Shown piece after piece: positions 19,927 to 31,124 of a stretch of DNA of 64,000 nt. Positions within the stretch are counted from its first letter, which is position 1. The number at the start of each line of letters is the position of its first letter. The DNA lies in NCBI GenBank assembly GCA_937625935.1, contig OW569346.1, positions 496,001 through 560,000 on the forward strand. Direction: 5' to 3'. The notes beneath the pieces are model-generated. The model was not told where the DNA came from and ran no database searches. It worked only from the letters and a program-made list of their open reading frames with translations. A program made the position numbers and the translations under genes. The stretch is from Tetramitus jugosus (Eukaryota > Protista > Heterolobosea).

Positions 19927-22536
19927 ATGACAGATAATTCAGAGGAAGATACTGAGAAACTCATCTTTGAAGGGAGAAAGAGAGGGATTTCATTCTCAGA
20001 GCATCTCGATGTTGCTGAGGACAAAGAGGAACAAGAACCATTGTTCGAGCAGCTAACTTGGATTTTTCAAACGTTTTCAGAGAGGCAGTACGAATTACAA
20101 CTGTTTACTAAGATAGTTAAAGGACATATTTGGGGATTTTCAGTGGAAGATGACTTTGTACCTGTGGAGTGCGTTCCCATCGACACTGTCTCTCAAGATA
20201 CAAGGGATACTACATGTATTGTTGTTACCCCTAGAAATGTGAAGTATCCATCAGAGGGCGTAATCAGCCCTAGTAAAGGGAGCACAATTATGATAAAATG
20301 TTCATCGGATAAGAATCGAGCCCTATGGCTAGAGGAAATTTCACGCAGTATGGAGCACTCTAACCATGAGATAGAAACTCCAGATATGAAACAAATATTT
20401 GAAATGGATAGAGTTGGTGCTCCATCTCAAGTATCTCTCATTCCCTCAGATATCGAAGAAAGACTCCAAGACGACCTAGTCCGGATTCTAGCAGATACAG
20501 AATCAATGATAGTTGATATCGGAAAGAGAAGTGATCTGAAGCTTGAACTGGAGCTCTTACGAGAAATTGGGGGTGGAAGTGATGAAGTACAGAGGATGGC
20601 AGGCGTGGCAAGAAAACAATTAAATGTTGAGAATTTAAAGGAGGAATTATCGTACTCAATTAATTATGATGAGTTCGAAGTTGAAATGGAAGAGGTGAAC
20701 AAGACCACTACTCAACTCCAATCATATTGTTCCTTCTCCAAAGAAGTTGAGTATGATTGCTTAGTGGCAAACAAGTTGTGGAAGGATCTCCAAATAATCA
20801 TCTCAGAAACTAAAGGCAGAAGGGAAACAGCAAAGAGGAGGAAACAAGAAGAAGACGAGAGGATTGAAAAACAAAAACTGGAGGAACTTAAAGTTAGAGA
20901 GGAAAAGAGACTTGAGGAAGAGGCCAGAAAGATTGAACAAGAAAGAAAGAAGTTGTTACAAAAGAAGAAAGAGGAGGAGAAGAGGAGGAAAGAAGAGGAA
21001 GAAGAACGGCTTAAACTTGATCAAATCAAGAAGCGGGAAGCAGAAGCAGAAGAACAGAAACATATCGATCTAGAGTCATCAAAGATTAGAAATACTTCAA
21101 TCAAGCTTGAAGAAGAGCTCGAACAAGAGGTTGAATCCAAGAATTCTGAAAGAAGAGAGAGATTATCAATTGAAAGAAGTGTATCCAGACTGGATTTTGT
21201 TAGAAAGAGCGATCCTGACAATTGTAAAACTGAAATTATAGAAGTCGAAGAGCCATCTTTGTTGGACAGAAGAATGATTAAAGAATCTCTCCAACCCTTA
21301 GATATCGAAACTACTGAAGAGGAAGAGAAATCCAACATTGTGCATAAATCTGAAGAGAACGATCAAGATGAGAAAGAAGTGAGAAGGAGGAGAATAGAGG
21401 AATTTCAGAGAAGAAGATCCCCAATGTCGTCTAAAATATCTCCCAATGATGTTCTCTTCCTACTAAATACTCCTTCCCGAAGGTCTCAGTCAGCCCAACC
21501 AAGTTTTAAGAGACCTCGATCTCCAACAAGAAGTGTCAGGAATACTGACGGAGAGGAGGAAACGTATCCAACAACCTTTAGATTATCCCAAGATACTGAT
21601 GAAGATTTTCAGTTGAACGAGAGAGATGATAATGAGATGATCGATAGAATCGAGTTTAACTTCGTGACGGAAAATGATGATTTCGTCCCTACCCATCACT
21701 TGGATCTAACGACAATTACTCCAGTCAAAGCCAAAAGATCCCAACCTCCACCAAAAGAATCTGCAAAGAAACTCCTGGACGGCATAAAACAAGAAATGAA
21801 AAAACAGGACGATGTATTGCTCTCTAGAGATGAGAACTTCCAAGTTTACAAAACCAAAGACAGCTCGCTAAAGGTTTATCGATCTCCAAACCACATCAAA
21901 CAGAGGATATCACCTAACAAGTATGGTATGAATACACCCTCCAAAACCCCTAATTCTCTGCAGATGACCCCTAGACCAACCAAACAATCACCCTCGGACT
22001 CCCTCTTTTCACCCTTAAATCTCTCCAAGATCCAAATTACGCCAACGAAACTCATTCATATTCAAAAGATGCTGAAGACAGGTCATGTGTTTTGGAAACA
22101 TTCATCCTCTGGAATATCAAAGAAAAAGTTGCAACATGTATTCCTATCACAAGACTCCCAATACTTGTGCTATGTCAAGCCTGATCTCAAAAAGGGAAAT
22201 CCCTTGTTGCAGGCTGTCAAGAACAAGCTTCCGGTTTCTTCGATTCGTTACGTGCAAAGGAATGGAGGTGCTGTTAAGATAAGAAGACAGGCTGAAACAA
22301 AGAACTTCCTCTCTGCAACGATTTTGGGAATTCGAAAAGATGAAGCCAAGGTGAATGCTGATTGTTTGTTTAGTATAGTAACTGATGACAGGACCTTGGA
22401 TTTAGAAGCCGCTACCCCAGATGTGGCTCAGTTATGGGCAGAGGTATTTGAAAAGTACTTCAATACGATCAATTCTTCCGGTGACACTCTGACTCAATTC
22501 AACACGACCCATATAATCCATCATCACTTTAAGTGA
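19927..22536 (+). CDS. Coiled-coil protein with C-terminal PH domain
   Basis: EK-rich coiled coil; PH motif CLFSIVTDDRTLDLEA...AQLW. The stop codon lies inside the left 16-bp repeat. Confidence 0.8.
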   Translation: MTDNSEEDTEKLIFEGRKRGISFSEHLDVAEDKEEQEPLFEQLTWIFQTFSERQYELQLFTKIVKGHIWGFSVEDDFVPVECVPIDTVSQDTRDTTCIVVTPRNVKYPSEGVISPSKGSTIMIKCSSDKNRALWLEEISRSMEHSNHEIETPDMKQIFEMDRVGAPSQVSLIPSDIEERLQDDLVRILADTESMIVDIGKRSDLKLELELLREIGGGSDEVQRMAGVARKQLNVENLKEELSYSINYDEFEVEMEEVNKTTTQLQSYCSFSKEVEYDCLVANKLWKDLQIIISETKGRRETAKRRKQEEDERIEKQKLEELKVREEKRLEEEARKIEQERKKLLQKKKEEEKRRKEEEEERLKLDQIKKREAEAEEQKHIDLESSKIRNTSIKLEEELEQEVESKNSERRERLSIERSVSRLDFVRKSDPDNCKTEIIEVEEPSLLDRRMIKESLQPLDIETTEEEEKSNIVHKSEENDQDEKEVRRRRIEEFQRRRSPMSSKISPNDVLFLLNTPSRRSQSAQPSFKRPRSPTRSVRNTDGEEETYPTTFRLSQDTDEDFQLNERDDNEMIDRIEFNFVTENDDFVPTHHLDLTTITPVKAKRSQPPPKESAKKLLDGIKQEMKKQDDVLLSRDENFQVYKTKDSSLKVYRSPNHIKQRISPNKYGMNTPSKTPNSLQMTPRPTKQSPSDSLFSPLNLSKIQITPTKLIHIQKMLKTGHVFWKHSSSGISKKKLQHVFLSQDSQYLCYVKPDLKKGNPLLQAVKNKLPVSSIRYVQRNGGAVKIRRQAETKNFLSATILGIRKDEAKVNADCLFSIVTDDRTLDLEAATPDVAQLWAEVFEKYFNTINSSGDTLTQFNTTHIIHHHFK

Positions 22537-22544
22537 GAGATTTG
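22529..22544 (+). repeat. Left copy of 16-bp direct repeat TTAAGTGAGAGATTTG
   Basis: Exact match to 26564-26579 (19/20 if extended leftwards to CACY). Confidence 0.95.
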
Positions 22545-22857
22545 TCGTATAGCTATATACATACTCTGGAACGAAAAATCTTGACTTCCTATCAATGTAC
22601 TTTTGTGTCCGATTCACTAATCGTTCACTCATCAACTGTAAGCATTCTGATTTTTCAACCCACCACAGTGTACACATCGGGCACTGTTGCATTCGACGAT
22701 AACTTGACTTCACAATTGGCAGGCAACCCCGCAACCACCTTCTTCACACTACAATTAAAAAACATATACAAAACAATAGTTTAACTTTACAAAAACATTC
22801 TTACAAATTGTAATACACAAAACAAAAAATACATACGCCTTTAACAAATCATTCTGT

Positions 22858-23343
22858 TTATTGATTAACAACTCTCCACCCTCCAGGGACCAATTCAAAT
22901 TGTTCCCATGAACATGCCAAGTAGAATCCCTTCCACTTCACATAACCATACCAAGAACCATTTTGATACTTCCAATCCAGAACATCATCAATTTGATAGA
23001 ACTGTCCATTGGAGGTGTAGTTTTGGTGAATGTGACAGTACTGGGTTCCACGTTTCCTTTGCAATTTGCACGGTAAGCCTGACTTGCAAACGGCCAAACA
23101 GTATGAGTACAAATTGTCCATATAAGACCTTATTGTTGATAGATTATTGACCATCGAAGATCGAAAATCCCGACACGTCAATACCAAATTCAACACATCT
23201 TCTACACCAAGGAACGAACCAACTAGATACACAAATAAATCAATATGTATAGCGGTTATTCTTACTTTTCTTTTGACTCCAAACTTTACCAATTGTTGGT
23301 GTTGGTTATGTCTTCTTTTGGCGCCTTTTCCTTGTTTTCCCAT
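22858..23343 (-). CDS. F-box-like + Cys3His zinc finger + chromodomain protein (161 aa from MGKQGK)
   Basis: Basic N-terminus; F-box-like IHIDLFVYLVGSFLGVEDVLNLVLTCRDFR; CLAVCKSGLPCK...GTQYCHIH; chromodomain-like FYQIDDVLDWK...YVKWKGF...SWE. Confidence 0.7.
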   Translation of the reverse strand: MGKQGKGAKRRHNQHQQLVKFGVKRKVRITAIHIDLFVYLVGSFLGVEDVLNLVLTCRDFRSSMVNNLSTIRSYMDNLYSYCLAVCKSGLPCKLQRKRGTQYCHIHQNYTSNGQFYQIDDVLDWKYQNGSWYGYVKWKGFYLACSWEQFELVPGGWRVVNQ

Positions 23344-23352
23344 TTGTTCATT

Positions 23353-23619
23353 GATTTTTTTCATCAAAAAAACTTGCAAAAAACAGAAAACAAACACTCT
23401 GAAGGACATCGTGAGAGCGAGTGACCTGATGATGAGTATGAGTTTTCTGAAGTTTGTCAAATTCTGTCCTATTGATACCATTAGAGATTTTTTCATCAAA
23501 AAAACAAAAGCACAGAAAACAAACACTCTGAAGGACATCGTGAGAGCGAGTGACCTGATGATGAGTGTGAGTTTTCTGACGTTTGTCAAATTCTGTCCTA
23601 CTATTGATACCATTAGAGA
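23353..23619. repeat. Tandem duplication, two ~133-bp units
   Basis: 23353-23487 and 23486-23619 are nearly identical, with a few substitutions and indels. Confidence 0.92.
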
Positions 23620-23640
23620 GGTGTTGAATTGTCCGATAAC

Positions 23641-24262
23641 TTGAGTATTCAGATCTCATTGATGACACTTGCTCTTCAAACATATCCTGATAACACTGAC
23701 TATATGTCAACAAGATTATTAATAACATTGCTAGTCAATTGAATAGCACTGCACTTGCTTCAAATGAAATTGTAGACATGTTGAAGCGATTGTTGTTGGT
23801 GCCACTCGAGTCATACAACAATGTGCTAACAGTTTTGAAGTTGGAGAAGTATGGTGATATTATTCATTCTCTTGGATATGAACAGAGAAAGTTTATTGCA
23901 CTGAGCATTGTGAGATGCGCACTTGACAATGGACACAAGATTTCAACATTTGAACATTTGAACAAGTGAACAAACTGTTTGATTTGATTCGTCCACTGTT
24001 GAAGGATGAGGAAGACCAGACAACATTCTCACCTTCTGACGACTCACCAATAGCTGCAACATTGCTCGAAGATTTCGAAGAAGAACAGAACTTGATTGCC
24101 AGATTGGTTCATTTGTTTGATAATAGCGATTCTGATCAATTGTTTAAAGTTTTGGCCGCAGCCAGAAAGCACTTTGGTCAGGGTGGTGTCAAGAGAATTC
24201 AATACACATTGGTACCGCTTGTATTCTCCTACTTGAAACTTGCTCAGAGAATCTACAATGCA
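23641..24262 (+). pseudogene. VPS35: Captured internal fragment of VPS35 (retromer) with two frameshifts
   Basis: SIQISLMTLALQTYPD...LLLVPLESYNNVLTVLKL...DFEEEQNLIARLVH...ARKHFGQGGVKRIQYTLVPLVF matches the central VPS35 region. Extra TA at ~23701 and 8-nt duplication AACATTTG at ~23945-23960. Confidence 0.88.
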
Positions 24263-24617
24263 CACTGCAAATAGACACCTCTTGTCGACTCTCCATCTTT
24301 TTGATTGATTTGATTGTTGTTGTTGATGTTCGTTGTGCGACTTGTGTTTTTCGTTGTTGTTGTCGTGTCAGAGAGAAAGTTTTTCGTTGGTTCAAGATTG
24401 GATAGATAGGTGGATATATTATAAAAAAATACAATAAATGTTGTATCAGTTTCCTCTAAGCTGCGGAATTGGTGCAGTTGTAAAAATTTCCGTTGAGACT
24501 GTCTTTACAACGGCAACGGCCATCTACCTCGGTTTAAAAAGCGCTGTCTTTTTCGCTGTTTGATTCATCTCACACAACAAATACAACACAACAAATACAC
24601 CACACAACAATAACATT

Positions 24618-26567
24618 ATGCCACGAGGCGTGCCTAAGGACGGTAAGAGAAAGAGAAAGAGAGAGACTGTCAAAAAGAATGAATACTCATCACATTACGT
24701 GGTCAAGGTCGGTCTGAAGTCTCTGTTGTTGCATCATCCAACTCTGTTACCAATCATACAAACTCAAGCTCTGGAGATTACAAGGATTGCTCTTCGACTC
24801 ACAAGATTTATAAACATATTTGTTTTGAGGCACTTGGAGAACAATTGTGATATCCCTCTCTTGAATCAAGGATTTATTCAACGAATCGGTTCAGTGTTGT
24901 TTGGACGCAAGTCGAAGACAAGAGACGATAATGTCAACCTCATCAACGGGTCAGTCAACATGGATGACGTAATAATCAAGCTAAGGAAGATTTGTGAGAA
25001 GTTATCCAAATCCATCAATTACGTTGCCAAGTCTCTCAATGTCAATATTTCTAACATGCTCAAGTTCACATTGGAACAAAGGCTGAGAAAGTACTTGAGA
25101 GTGAGGATGGCTCAATTGCACAATGGTCAATCAATCCCCAGGTCTGAATACAGAAGAGTAGTAGAATACATCATCAGAAAGTTGATATTTGTCACTCCAG
25201 TTTATGATTTTGTCAAACTGCCTCCAAAAGAGTTGATAGAGACTATTCCTGTGTTGATCCAAGAGGTTCGAACATTTGTTGGTGCTGAAACCGACGAAGT
25301 GGTTGATGAATCGTTTGTGAACAACAACACCAATAACATGCTGAAGTTTTACTGGCATGTTCAACAGTTTCTGATTGTCAATGGAACAAAATCATTTGCA
25401 TTGTTGCCCTTGTCCCACTTTAAATGTAGATGCATGGAGATAGGTACAACGGACCTGATAGACATGCGCCAACAGAAGAAGAAGGGAAATGTACAAGTAA
25501 TTGAACCCATTGAATTGAAGTATAATCTCAAGTGTTTGAATGTTGGAACAAAGAAGATTCAAATCGACTCAATCAGAACAGACGGTATTCAGGCCTCTGT
25601 TGTTCTCAGACATCAACTCGTTGGCATCCACAAGAACAATAAGGCAAAGGTATCCAAGGGCCAGAAAGAAGCAAAGAAGATGAAGAAAGAAGCAACTATT
25701 GTTGATCAAAATGCAGATTACTTGATTGGTATCGATCCTGGTATTGTCACATTGATGAGTTGTGCCGATTCAGATGGTAAAAAGTGGGAGTTCTCCAATA
25801 AGGCATACAGACGACTGTCTCATCATTCACAGAACGCCAAACGTTTGTTGAAATACAAAGCAAAATGGAACACGAAAACTGGAAAAGATTTAGATGAACT
25901 CCATAACTCGATCAAACAAGCCAGTGTATCGACAAGTGATCTGTTTATCGAACACATTGATTCTGTTTTGAAAGTCGAAGATGACTTGCTTGATTTTTAT
26001 TGCACTCCAAAGGTGAAGAGACTGAATTGGGACAGCTATATTATGAGAGACAAAACAATTGCTGGAGTAATGAATGATTTTCACAAAAGAGCAAATGGAA
26101 GAAAGATGGTCATTGGCATGGGCAATGCTGGTTTCAAAAATAGTTATAGAGGACATGCTTCAACGCCCAAGGGCAAGCTGTTGAAGAAACTGAATGAACG
26201 ATTTGAAGTGAAAATGATTGACGAATTCATGACCAGCCAAAAATGTTGTGCTTGCCATTCCCATTTGAAGCCAGTCAAGCACAAACGAATGGACAAGAAA
26301 GGTGTATCGGCAATCTCTATTGTACGAGGAGTTAAGCAGTGTGCAACCACTAAATGTTTAGTGACTCACAACAGAGACATCAATGCGGCCAAGAACATGC
26401 TCCATCTACTGAGAACAGAAATGGATGGACAGTCACGTCCCAATGCCTTCAAGAGGAAGAAAAAGGTCGCAAAAGAATTAATCAAAATGGTGGAACACCT
26501 CCAAGGCTCACTCCATCAAGCTGCTATGTCCTATTATGGTTTGATCGACAGTGGACCGCCACCTTAA
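24618..26567 (+). CDS. Fanzor1 RNA-guided endonuclease (eukaryotic TnpB homolog)
   Basis: N-terminal NLS-like KRKRKR; FALLP and TDG motifs; RuvC-I IGIDPG (D373); Gly at the canonical RuvC-II position (VIGMGN) with shifted Glu in IDEFMTS (E536); CxxC...CxxxxC zinc ribbon; RuvC-III NRDINAAKN (D587); intronless. Confidence 0.93.
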   Translation: MPRGVPKDGKRKRKRETVKKNEYSSHYVVKVGLKSLLLHHPTLLPIIQTQALEITRIALRLTRFINIFVLRHLENNCDIPLLNQGFIQRIGSVLFGRKSKTRDDNVNLINGSVNMDDVIIKLRKICEKLSKSINYVAKSLNVNISNMLKFTLEQRLRKYLRVRMAQLHNGQSIPRSEYRRVVEYIIRKLIFVTPVYDFVKLPPKELIETIPVLIQEVRTFVGAETDEVVDESFVNNNTNNMLKFYWHVQQFLIVNGTKSFALLPLSHFKCRCMEIGTTDLIDMRQQKKKGNVQVIEPIELKYNLKCLNVGTKKIQIDSIRTDGIQASVVLRHQLVGIHKNNKAKVSKGQKEAKKMKKEATIVDQNADYLIGIDPGIVTLMSCADSDGKKWEFSNKAYRRLSHHSQNAKRLLKYKAKWNTKTGKDLDELHNSIKQASVSTSDLFIEHIDSVLKVEDDLLDFYCTPKVKRLNWDSYIMRDKTIAGVMNDFHKRANGRKMVIGMGNAGFKNSYRGHASTPKGKLLKKLNERFEVKMIDEFMTSQKCCACHSHLKPVKHKRMDKKGVSAISIVRGVKQCATTKCLVTHNRDINAAKNMLHLLRTEMDGQSRPNAFKRKKKVAKELIKMVEHLQGSLHQAAMSYYGLIDSGPPP

Positions 26568-26585
26568 GTGAGAGATTTGACAAAT
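26480..26585 (+). ncRNA. Candidate Fanzor omegaRNA (scaffold overlapping ORF 3' end, guide from the right flank)
   Basis: Located at the element's right end. GGTGG 26489-93 can pair with CCACC 26559-63; ATCAAGCT 26515-22 can pair with GGTTTGAT 26538-45. Boundaries are inferred. Confidence 0.5.
26564..26579 (+). repeat. Right copy of 16-bp direct repeat TTAAGTGAGAGATTTG
   Basis: Exact match to 22529-22544; contains the Fanzor stop codon TAA (26565-26567). Confidence 0.95.
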
Positions 26586-26671
26586 GAATCATACAGAGAG
26601 CAATTGATAAGTAGAATGCCTATTTATTTCACTGTTGGAAAAATAAAATGATAGTATAATACAGTTAGGTC

Positions 26672-28390
26672 CTACATCAGCCTCTCCATTTTCCTAACAT
26701 TCTTGTTTATATGTACATCTTGTTTGTCAACTTTTTCACTCAATTTGTCTAATTGAATATTTGATTTGTCAAGTTGATCACCCATTGTGTGGGCCATATT
26801 CTTCAAATTAACCAAAACGTGCAGCATTTGGTCTTGCTTCTCATCACTTTCCTTCCTCTTCTTCTGTCTGGCAATTTGCATAAGCACTTGCGATCTATCA
26901 GATGAGGAAGGATCTTGCATGGAGTTGTCTTCTGTGGTAAACCTTAGTCGATCGTCAGAAACTAATGTCGATAAACACTGTTGTAATAGCCGATTCTTTT
27001 CCAATGCCGCCACGGAGCAACTGCGAACTGTCCCCACTCGACTCGCGTTTTGCAAATGATACAAAATAATAGGAGCAAACACGGACACTATTTCATATCC
27101 TAGCACAGATGGTTCCCTGTCTGTACTGATCGCTGCTTTGAAAGAGATCCTAAAGTGACACTCTGTTGTCAAATATTCAATGTATTGAATATGAGAAATG
27201 GCAATCGATTGAGAAACGACACGATTCGACTCATTGACCAATTCTATACAATTACGATTGTTCGTGAATGCAAGTATCGAATGCACAAACTTTTCATCTG
27301 CTTTCGTCTTTACACACACCGGAAAGCTACTCTCATACGAGAACACATGATTCTTATTGTCAGAGATGGATGAGCTCCTAGTCGAATGTGACAACGTCGT
27401 GGATTCTTCCATGGGTTGCGCATAGTGTGGTTCAGACGGTGGTAACCGATGCAACGTCACCAAATTCTTCATTGTTCCCGTCAAGGACGTCATACCGCGC
27501 AACAATCGATCCGACACTCTCAAATGATCTTCAATCTCATCCAATTGTCGATCCGATTGATTCAAACATTCTTCTTGTCTTGCCAGTGAATCAATTGTGC
27601 CTTGAGCTCTATTCATTGCGTACAATGCCTTTCGTATCATTCGATCATCAACGTTCTCTCTTTGTTGGTCATTGTTTAGACTCGAGTCTAACACCACTGG
27701 CGGTGGCAATGATGACAATGATTTCTTCTGATTTGTGGACCGGCTCTGCTTCTCCCACTTGCTCACTCGATTTGTCTTGTTACTCTTCGTCCTATTGACT
27801 CTGTTGTTCGATGGATCATCATCATTATTATTATTATTATTACCACCACACCACTTGTTTTGATAGTCAACAAATGAATGATAGTACAGAGCATAGCACG
27901 GAGAATGCTGTGACATTGTCCAACAATGATTCAACCAACAAAACACATCGTCATTGACACATGAACTCGTCAGTATCATTCTCTGCAACAATGATGCTTC
28001 TGCACTCTCCTGTTGTTGTTGTTGTTGTTGAGTCTCATCTGTTTTTATCATTGATGATGATGATGATGTGATGGACTGTTGAACATCAAAGCTATGAAAC
28101 ACAAAACTATTTTGCACGGCATGATCAGTAGTAGTAGTCGTAGTAGAGCTACTAGTCGTGACAATGTGAATGCAAGAGCGCAACAAGTAATAGCAAAGAG
28201 ATGTCGATTGAGTCAATTGAGTCACTCGTTTCCAGGAACATGACACGATGATGGGTTGTTGCTGTTGCTGTTGTTGTTGCTGTTCTCCAACAAAATAAAA
28301 GCATGACGCATCACAGAAGAGAGTTCCGGCGATGGGAGCGGAGAATTTTGATTTTTGGAGGGAACAAGTGCATTGGAAGATGATTGTCAT
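26672..28390 (-). CDS. Qbc-SNARE (SNAP-25/29/47-like) with N-terminal GRAM/PH-like region
   Basis: Two SNARE motifs: LARQEECLNQSDRQLDEIE...LLRGMTS and LVNLKNMAHTMGDQLDKSNIQLDKL. Confidence 0.75.
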   Translation of the reverse strand: MTIIFQCTCSLQKSKFSAPIAGTLFCDASCFYFVGEQQQQQQQQQPIIVSCSWKRVTQLTQSTSLCYYLLRSCIHIVTTSSSTTTTTTDHAVQNSFVFHSFDVQQSITSSSSSMIKTDETQQQQQQQESAEASLLQRMILTSSCVNDDVFCWLNHCWTMSQHSPCYALYYHSFVDYQNKWCGGNNNNNNDDDPSNNRVNRTKSNKTNRVSKWEKQSRSTNQKKSLSSLPPPVVLDSSLNNDQQRENVDDRMIRKALYAMNRAQGTIDSLARQEECLNQSDRQLDEIEDHLRVSDRLLRGMTSLTGTMKNLVTLHRLPPSEPHYAQPMEESTTLSHSTRSSSISDNKNHVFSYESSFPVCVKTKADEKFVHSILAFTNNRNCIELVNESNRVVSQSIAISHIQYIEYLTTECHFRISFKAAISTDREPSVLGYEIVSVFAPIILYHLQNASRVGTVRSCSVAALEKNRLLQQCLSTLVSDDRLRFTTEDNSMQDPSSSDRSQVLMQIARQKKRKESDEKQDQMLHVLVNLKNMAHTMGDQLDKSNIQLDKLSEKVDKQDVHINKNVRKMERLM

Positions 28391-28760: not shown

Positions 28761-31124
28761 ATGAACAGAGGTACACCACCACCTTCACTTCAACAACAAC
28801 AACAGTATCGCTCCACCACTCCTCCCACTTCTCGTTCTACGACTCCTCCCACTTCTCGTAGCTCTCCACCCTTGCACAACATTCATCCAACTGCCAGAAC
28901 TCCTTCCACTCCATCGACTACAACACCAACAACAACAACACCAACAGTAAAATCAACAACAACGACTCCTCCAACAACAAATGGTAGTTCTCGCATATCA
29001 CCTACTCTATCAAAACCTCAATCAGCAACAGGTGTCAATGCAAGCAGTGGTGGTCCACCTACTCAATTCACTGCGCGACCCAGAGACTTTGAGTGTTCAT
29101 TCAGTCAAAACAGAGGTACCATCACAGTGAATCGAAAGAACGTTTATTGGAGAGAAACAAACATGTTGGCTCACTCTGGTGATCCATTGTCATCGTCAGC
29201 AGTATCATCGTCATCTGCATTCCACCTCAAAGAATGGCGATTCACCTATGATTTATTGGAGGATATTCGCGTTCATAAAAACATTCCAAAAATTCGTTTT
29301 GTGTTGTCTAAACCGATTCACATACCTACCAATCAGGGACTCATTGGTGGTGTAGGTGGCATGGGTGGTAGTGCCACTGCCGGTAGTGGTGTCGGCGGTG
29401 CATCTGCCGGAACAATTGCCAGCAAGAATGTCGATGTTGAATTCAACACACTCGAAGCCAGAAATTTGTGCAAGCAGTGCGTGTCAGAGTTTCACAGACT
29501 GTTCCGGTTGGAATCAGCACTCACAAAGACTGATCGATTAAAGTATCAAGAACTGAGCAAGAATCAAGAGTTGAATATGCTGTATCACGAATTGGTAAAG
29601 ACGGGCTTGTTGAGTGAAGATGAATTTTGGGAAACGAGAATGCACTTGTTGAAGGAGGATGGTCGATCGGTGAGTAAGACTCTGGGTCCAAAGAACGCAT
29701 TGGACACGATATTGGACCCGAATCAGCCCACATGGAACTTGAACCGTCAAATTATTAGGCAAATCTTCATTGAGTATCCAGGTGCTCAGGAAGCGTTCCA
29801 GAAGAAGGTTCCAAACGAGATGACCGAAGAACAGTTTTGGGAAAAGTTTCGAACATCGTACTATTTTCACAAGACGAGAGCAGCCAAGGCCGACACGACA
29901 AAGGCTGATATCTTTAAGCCATATGAGAAGGCTGATGAAAAGCAGGCACAGGAGGAGCTCAAAGCAGTTGCCGTGGAAAAGTTTGTGGATCTGACTAGGG
30001 ATGAAACGTTGGGTATTGGTTATGGTGTGAAGCCTGATGAGCTCACTGCACCTGCACCCAAGATGGCAGAAAACAAATTACTGCATCACTTGAATCTGAC
30101 ATCGGCTCGTGTCATGAGGGATTACTTGGGCGAGAAGAAGAAGGCTGTTCCTGATCAACCCAATATCAGTGATGCCATTTCAGGGGAGGTTGTCTCTGGG
30201 ACTAATGATCCGATGAGCCAAGCGAGAAAGCACACCATTATGGATGATTTGATGATTGAGAATGAGAGTCAAACATTGATCCCATTGAAAATTCAGGACA
30301 AGCACAGATATTTTGAGGGATTATTGTCAGATAACACGAAGCAGAATGCAACAGGACTGGGTAGTACTCAAGTCAATCTATCATGTACACAAACGGAAAT
30401 GCTTGATATGTTTAGGACTGAAGTTGATATGCTCATGTTTGAGAGTGATAGCTTCAGGAACTCTCTTGTACCAAATGATCTCGCATCGACTATCGCTGGC
30501 GAAATTATTAATTTGATTACACAAAACGATGTGACAATTGCAGAGTACAATGATCAATCATTGAGCCCTGACTTTTTATCGAAATTTAAAACGACATATG
30601 CCCTGGTCAATGAAATTTTGAGGCATGTGTGGGGATTACTCAGCACAACTACCAAACAGTGGAATGATAATGCAAGCTTTAGAACAAAGACCGAGAGTCT
30701 CATTGCAATGCTGCAGGGTCATCGCAAAAAGCTCTATTCATTCCAGGAGACTTATCCAAACCACCAGACCAAACAACTGACCAATGCTCTGATAGAGAGT
30801 ATTGATGTGGCCAATGAGATGTATCAACGGAGGAATGCCGTACCAGCACCAAGAGCAGGAATCGCACAGAGCAGTCCTCTGCAGAGACCTGTTCTGGGTA
30901 CTCCTGGTTCCGCCGGTCGACCTACTATTCAACCTATCGCCATAGGAACTCCAGGTACACCTGTCAACAAACCAACACTGTCCTTCTCCCTGAAACCTTC
31001 ACCAGGACTCGGTGTCAGATCACCACTTCAAGCACAACAACCAATTGCTAACAACAACAACGATGAAGAAGACGAAGAAGATGACGTTTTCAGTCGTCCC
31101 AACAAGAGAATGCGTGAAGCATAG
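28761..31124 (+). CDS. GTF2H1: TFIIH subunit p62 (Tfb1)
   Basis: PH-like N-domain; two BSD domains (LYHELVKTGLLSEDEFW; IFIEYP...VPNEMTEEQFWEKF). Confidence 0.85.
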   Translation: MNRGTPPPSLQQQQQYRSTTPPTSRSTTPPTSRSSPPLHNIHPTARTPSTPSTTTPTTTTPTVKSTTTTPPTTNGSSRISPTLSKPQSATGVNASSGGPPTQFTARPRDFECSFSQNRGTITVNRKNVYWRETNMLAHSGDPLSSSAVSSSSAFHLKEWRFTYDLLEDIRVHKNIPKIRFVLSKPIHIPTNQGLIGGVGGMGGSATAGSGVGGASAGTIASKNVDVEFNTLEARNLCKQCVSEFHRLFRLESALTKTDRLKYQELSKNQELNMLYHELVKTGLLSEDEFWETRMHLLKEDGRSVSKTLGPKNALDTILDPNQPTWNLNRQIIRQIFIEYPGAQEAFQKKVPNEMTEEQFWEKFRTSYYFHKTRAAKADTTKADIFKPYEKADEKQAQEELKAVAVEKFVDLTRDETLGIGYGVKPDELTAPAPKMAENKLLHHLNLTSARVMRDYLGEKKKAVPDQPNISDAISGEVVSGTNDPMSQARKHTIMDDLMIENESQTLIPLKIQDKHRYFEGLLSDNTKQNATGLGSTQVNLSCTQTEMLDMFRTEVDMLMFESDSFRNSLVPNDLASTIAGEIINLITQNDVTIAEYNDQSLSPDFLSKFKTTYALVNEILRHVWGLLSTTTKQWNDNASFRTKTESLIAMLQGHRKKLYSFQETYPNHQTKQLTNALIESIDVANEMYQRRNAVPAPRAGIAQSSPLQRPVLGTPGSAGRPTIQPIAIGTPGTPVNKPTLSFSLKPSPGLGVRSPLQAQQPIANNNNDEEDEEDDVFSRPNKRMREA

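Follow-up and report, generated by a model that had tools for sequence, protein, structure and literature searches.

A 4.0-kb block in a 64,000-nt stretch of Tetramitus jugosus contig OW569346.1 (hereafter the window) carries a predicted Fanzor1 gene and is bounded by an exact 16-bp direct repeat. We show here that this block is a left-truncated member of a young, multi-copy, non-autonomous transposon family with terminal inverted repeats (TIRs) and a TTAA target-site duplication (TSD), which carries a Fanzor1 gene and host-gene cargo. Rather than a new type of element, it is a degenerate copy within a Fanzor1 family that resembles Kolobok, and its repeat is a probable footprint of cutting by the native Fanzor, judging from sequence comparisons. 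Coordinates without prefix are positions in the window, on the + strand unless stated otherwise; those starting with G000:C or C refer to pieces of the genome, and L0xx designates family loci.

More than 30 genome loci match the block, and the genome harbours more than 35 related ends or copies. In a genome-wide census, approximately 20 copies had both ends; of the one-ended copies, approximately 16 retained the right end and 2-5 the left, an excess of right-only over left-only copies (binomial p 0.001-0.03). Complete copies read TTAA-GG...CC-TTAA, with TIRs of 12-15 bp. All right ends read but one stop at CCGCCACC or CTACATCC, followed by TTAA, and 18 of the 18 left ends read have TTAA followed by GGTGGC... 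or GGATGTAG..., matching the right end in inverted orientation over 12-15 bp. For several copies, joining the host flanks at TTAA restores long host open reading frames (ORFs). The family thus has the TIRs, fixed short TSD, dispersed copies and empty alleles that define non-autonomous TIR DNA transposons. It is young, with copies less than 1% apart and many ORFs and guide RNA (omegaRNA) ends intact. Metagenomic relatives at 79% and 59% protein identity carry the same right end, and a metagenome scan gave one short degenerate locus. In a compact metagenomic relative of ~2.2 kb (L031:400-430), the left end is TCAA followed by the TIR, an imperfect target duplication.

The first-pass annotation of this DNA had described the block as devoid of TIRs, with an architecture fitting none known. 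A 15-bp right TIR with CC at its end is present at 26549-26563 (- strand), matching the left TIR of sister copies at 14 of 15 bases, and only the left TIR is missing from the window copy. The genome search proposed in that annotation did find other copies and their flanks, with ordinary TIRs and the 4-bp TTAA duplication, the outcome that it had itself named as speaking against a new architecture. Full-length sisters run ~580 bp further left of position 22551, where the truncated element starts, to their TIR. Loose ends at 22551 were also found in runs X4 and X5 (all runs consisting of contigs only). As initially annotated, the 4.0-kb block harbours no ORF for a transposase, a reverse transcriptase or a Rep-helicase. 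The latter two absences, together with the TIRs and the TTAA TSD, rule out a Helitron or a non-long-terminal-repeat retrotransposon. The piggyBac elements also have a TTAA TSD, with CC at the 5' end rather than RR...YY termini, and they are ruled out by the GG...CC termini of the family.

A TTAA TSD combined with RR...YY termini is the signature of Kolobok, which is known from Naegleria, and the GG...CC termini of both TIR types agree with the 5'-RR and YY-3' criterion for this superfamily (PMC9587614). These features suggest that the family is Kolobok-like; the superfamily is only suggested, because no transposase with these ends was found. A search with the Kolobok transposase profile PF20700 was blank, with an uninformative control that was blank as well. 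Kolobok is absent from the Fanzor carriers listed in PMC13565253. In the 23 loci considered, the target context is asymmetric, with pyrimidines at -3/-2, A or T at -1 and G at +1: TTAA has A or T before it in 21 of the left flanks (p 0.001 against a background of 60%) and G after it in 11 of the right flanks (p 0.002), both tested after the fact. A target-adjacent motif (TAM) of the form W-TTAA, as predicted here, would leave the CC-TTAA end of the donor itself uncut.

The direct repeat noted in the first annotation is an exact 16-mer at 22529-22544 and 26564-26579, for which 0.10 matches are expected in shuffles. Its left copy consists of the target TTAA (22529-22532, the predicted TAM core) and 12 nt identical to the element's right flank (the predicted guide target), and its right copy of the TTAA target duplication (26564-26567) and the first 12 nt of the host flank. 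These 12 nt are also the start of the predicted ~15-nt guide (26568-26582; guide length from PMC10711439 and PMC13565253). The empty allele called for by the first-pass annotation was found in the soil metagenome: a contig of run X5 (record 17) joins both flanks with a single repeat copy, and the repeat is therefore duplicated host sequence. The duplication in complete copies does not go beyond TTAA, except where it briefly overlaps the GG terminus, which rules out a 16-bp TSD as a family trait.

Two other left-truncated copies, L020 and L010, repeat TTAA plus 9 nt of their own right flanks, with 3 of the 9 nt in L020 corresponding to microhomology. The repeats of the window copy, L020 and L010 are thus 16, 13 and 13 bp long, respectively. 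The chance of a 9-nt match is ~5e-6 per locus, and only 5% of random points have a TTAA within 24 nt. In each scar the duplication starts at TTAA and stays shorter than the in vitro cut distance. The junctions of L026 and L027 were not counted, as their apparent left flanks match other host loci. The left part of L027 (C19:172912-173782) matches C16:300341-301219 at 96%, and that of L026 (C1:683859-684794) matches C28:170351-171264 at 80%; these segments may be captured filler or paralogues.

The left flank of L010 and its 13-bp scar are also found as internal cargo of the complete subfamily L002, L003 and L012 (L002:1081-1290; L010:574-772). In L002, the 197 bp before the fossil repeat are the L010 left flank, and a 78-bp host piece 100% identical to C13 begins right after it, which marks the fossil repeat as a repair junction. 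It thus seems that this subfamily, from which the window copy derives, took up a scarred locus, a new left TIR being added upstream of the truncated copy.

The Fanzor gene of the block is an uninterrupted ORF of 649 residues with Fanzor1 hallmarks (24618-26567), as first annotated. Its identity as a Fanzor1 is supported by sequence and structure predictions. It matches SpuFz1 at the sequence level (E 2e-15), and a 107-sequence profile matched three solved Fanzor1 proteins at E 1e-97 to 1e-71, as opposed to only 9e-10 for Fanzor2. The structure search suggested by the first-pass annotation gave a concordant result. Using a model predicted from the 107-sequence alignment (predicted local distance difference test score 89.6), Foldseek returned SpuFz1 as its top match (E 2e-25, template modelling score 0.70), with Fanzor1 structures at ranks 1-7, ahead of Fanzor2, TnpB and Cas12. 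Invariant or nearly so across the 107 sequences are D373 of the D-P-G motif, the RuvC-II Gly G502, the shifted RuvC Glu E536, the C4 zinc finger residues C543/C546/C575/C580 and R586-D587, the latter Asp belonging to the N-R-D motif. The RuvC residues D373/E536/D587 and the zinc finger are preserved in the window copy, whose ORF differs from that of its sister L002 by 6 nt in 1,911 nt and by 3 residues, and its protein looks intact. The Fanzor ORFs of sister copies encode 637 residues; that of the window copy has 12 additional read-through residues because a 55-nt deletion took out its stop codon. The Fanzor of this family forms a separate clade, with only a handful of metagenomic proteins as close kin. 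One Fanzor relative, P0010 (971 residues), has an N-terminal HMG-box match just below the cut-off.

The deletion, in which 55 nt are replaced by 2 nt at 26530-26531, falls in the predicted omegaRNA scaffold, a remnant of which spans 26497-26567 (5' start approximate). In addition to the stop codon, it removes half of predicted stem 1 and the internal arm that pairs with the TIR end and TTAA. In predicted folds, intact omegaRNA ends mostly pair an internal UUAAGG with CCUUAA, and their fold z-scores range from -1.4 to -4.0, against 0.14 for the window copy. In the omegaRNA alignment 93% of the cells pair, yet covariation is no higher than in shuffles. The span 26400-26600, proposed earlier as the guide source, contains this broken omegaRNA. 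The window copy has probably lost its own guide RNA and, with 55 nt of omegaRNA missing, is probably not self-sufficient. The earlier description of the Fanzor as probably active therefore holds for the family, given its intact ORFs, intact omegaRNA ends and low divergence, but doubtful for the window copy. At the right end of L009, an independent deletion begins at the same base, just before the Fanzor stop codon, and damages the omegaRNA as well. Three right ends with omegaRNA sequence (G000:C10:247203, C24:126331 and C25:365156) lack a Fanzor match nearby and might be guide-only 'ghost' loci.

We consider it fairly likely that the 16-bp repeat is a scar: a Fanzor would have cleaved the empty site, and gap repair, one-sided and aborted, would have brought back part of the element. 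For the Fanzor1 enzymes characterized so far, cleavage falls 14-21 nt downstream of the TAM; GtFz1, with the TAM TTAAN, cuts after 14-17 nt and SpuFz1 after 16-17 and 20-21 nt (PMC10432273), and guides extend ~15 nt past the TSD (PMC10711439). In the proposed sequence of events, a full-length element would have been present at this TTAA on the sister chromatid or the homologue, and an empty site would have arisen by clean excision by a transposase acting in trans, or existed as the other allele. The Fanzor, with an omegaRNA reading from the right end into the flank, would recognize TTAA together with the guide match, making its cut 12 nt or more downstream. Of the two ends, the right-hand one would be homologous to the donor all the way to the tip and could then copy the element from right to left, whereas the TTAA and guide-matching bases of the left-hand end would not fit the donor's left junction. 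Copying would have stopped early, and the copied end would have been joined, with a filler of 6 nt (22545-22550, where full-length copies have none), to the left-hand end still carrying TTAA and 12 nt. The loss of most of the omegaRNA through the 55-nt deletion may have occurred at any time relative to this repair. Copying that starts at the right-hand end, arrests early and is followed by end-joining would yield a precise right end, a variable left truncation and filler, along with a duplication comprising TTAA and a stretch somewhat shorter than the cut distance. It would also explain the excess of right ends. Template switches during the same repair might capture host DNA, and scarred loci might seed new complete elements.

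The alleles at this locus provide a suggestive element. The predicted cut zone (+13 to +24 past TTAA, 26580-26591) is length-polymorphic, with 8 nt missing at +16 to +23 in the second haplotype of run X1 and 3 additional nt in the X5 allele. These length differences are only suggestive because the spacer is intergenic.

Several observations weigh against our interpretation. The polymorphic zone belongs to an intergenic spacer of ~135 bp, a place where indels would be no surprise, and no full-length donor allele was seen at the window locus. The mobilizing transposase was not found; searches with the left end gave only Fanzor copies and one mini-element, and no further long element. Trimming must be assumed, since all repeats fall short of the 14-17 nt at which the cut is placed. 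In three other truncated copies, L005, L007 and L035 (the last one metagenomic), only 0-1 base matches beyond TTAA. Full readings cover three scars, with approximately nine further right-end-only truncated loci outside this count, and the comparison of scars in this genome drew on the Fanzor-carrying TTAA family only.

The TTAA-only truncations L005, L007 and L035 are rather what might be expected from repair without a Fanzor, in which, after excision by a transposase, the left end would anneal to the right one via TTAA, undergo templated extension over 9-12 nt by a polymerase of the end-joining pathway and be joined to a partial gap-repair copy. The fillers and microhomology at the junctions also fit this scenario, and repaired breaks often carry insertions templated by neighbouring flanks. 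It nevertheless predicts neither the right-end excess nor the constant sidedness of the repeat, in which right-flank sequence reappears at the left junction every time, and in 3 of 6 cases it needs an extra cycle of annealing, extension and release. Moreover, the Fanzor-less Helitron-1N1 of Chlamydomonas is without such duplications (PMC3627910). We regard this alternative, the main one, as rather unlikely. The variable-length duplication, 5' truncation and fixed 3' end are also reminiscent of retrotransposition, through target-primed reverse transcription at a new site by a machinery like that of long interspersed nuclear elements acting in trans. This appears very improbable: the window copy has no poly(A), its 3' end is the TIR and TTAA as in complete DNA-transposon copies, it includes ~2 kb upstream of the Fanzor start that are unlikely to be part of the Fanzor transcript, and no parental flank was carried along even though the omegaRNA runs ~15 nt into it. 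Finally, a distinct TIR-less element moving with a 16-bp target duplication, which the window taken alone resembles, has next to no likelihood given ~20 sisters with TIRs and TTAA (the closest 0.3% diverged in the ORF), a left boundary found in no other copy and the variable repeat length.

The scars of this family resemble those of Chlamydomonas CRe-1/2/3 (Bao and Jurka, 2013), Fanzor-carrying Helitron2 elements with 5'-truncated copies and duplications of 7-19 bp right after the target tetranucleotide, while their Fanzor-less relatives almost never show such duplications (PMC3627910). Common features are 5' truncation, an excess of 3' ends, variable duplications after the tetranucleotide and filler after the duplication. 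The Chlamydomonas carrier is a Helitron without TSD, whereas that of Tetramitus is a TIR element with a TTAA TSD, which makes the excess over the true TSD measurable. Craig called the cause of the Chlamydomonas duplications unknown, with joint HUH and Fanzor cleavage at integration as a guess (PMC10288648). Our literature search, with many subscription journals outside its coverage, found no paper interpreting such repeats as homing scars. As in the restorative homing by TnpB of IS200/IS605 and IS607, our proposal has an RNA-guided nuclease cutting the empty site, after which the break recombines with the donor; TnpB homing has been shown experimentally in bacteria. A 2026 review reports homing for TnpB and IscB and lists Fanzors for cleavage but not homing (PMC13565253).

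With the known Fanzor1 systems (SpuFz1, 8GKH/9CEY; PpFz1; GtFz1), the family shares the fold, the RuvC triad and the zinc finger, and its predicted right-end omegaRNA would likewise have the TSD inside the scaffold. The window Fanzor is only ~19% identical to SpuFz1, from which it also differs by its deleted omegaRNA. The insect-virus Fanzor1 elements HVav-1, SFav-1, PUgv-1, HAgv-1 and HAmn-1 are described as non-autonomous, with 13-bp TIRs and a 4-bp TTAN TSD, no superfamily being given (PMC3627910). By description they resemble the Tetramitus family, except for their viral hosts.

The cargo of the window copy originates from C21 and from Vps35, of which the host has a single gene, on C22. 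The truncated element starts with captured host DNA (22551-22855; 96-97% identity to G000:C21:322109-322410), and an internal, broken Vps35 fragment lies at 23577-24264 (97% to G000:C22:83229-83909). Different Vps35 stretches are found in different subfamilies (G000:C27:337929-338750 and the C34, C50 and C16 copies), pointing to repeated capture from the host gene. A 251-residue ORF, at best a putative gene, spans the cargo (22858-23613, - strand), with a weak CCCH-finger match below the cut-off. A ~132-bp cargo unit duplicated in tandem (23356-23619) is found only in some subfamilies, and the region upstream of the Fanzor ORF (24446-24617), common to the main subfamilies, is presumably its promoter and 5' untranslated region. 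A bacterial promoter scan, not designed for this host, was blank. Pack-type TIR elements such as Pack-MULEs likewise carry mosaics of host-gene fragments between their TIRs and no transposase. The Tetramitus element differs from them by encoding a predicted sequence-specific nuclease, which could trigger the repair that captures host DNA.

The block lies between two convergent host genes, as first annotated. The upstream one (19927-22536) codes for an 869-residue protein with a C-terminal PH domain (PF00169, E 1.8e-5), and its final codon and stop are inside the left repeat copy. The downstream one (26672-28390, - strand) has a weak SNARE-like match. In L016, L020, L023 and the window (22529-22536), the host ORF upstream ends with a stop codon that overlaps or abuts the target TTAA, and the gene stays intact, unlike in L002, L004 and L015, where the insertions split long ORFs. 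A nearby host gene with a BSD domain (28761-31124), presumably TFIIH p62-like, is ordinary.

Views on the role of Fanzors in their native hosts continue to be extrapolated from bacterial TnpB. In this genome, several copies bear scars positioned as RNA-guided cutting would place them. The chances seem to us evenly balanced that the duplications of TTAA plus 9-12 nt are in vivo footprints of Fanzor1 cutting empty sites, that a cut-and-paste element of Kolobok type uses the Fanzor as its homing nuclease and that aborted repairs capture host genes and seed subfamilies. Fanzor cutting would also suggest one explanation for the variable Chlamydomonas duplications reported in 2013. Intact pairs of Fanzor1 and omegaRNA, for which the TAM (Y)YW-TTAA is predicted, are available from this family, possibly in a carrier superfamily not previously listed. 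With public long reads, both haplotypes deposited (GCA_937625935.1, GCA_937658345.1) and dozens of young copies in a diploid amoeba available from a culture collection, homing in a eukaryote may be tested from existing data.

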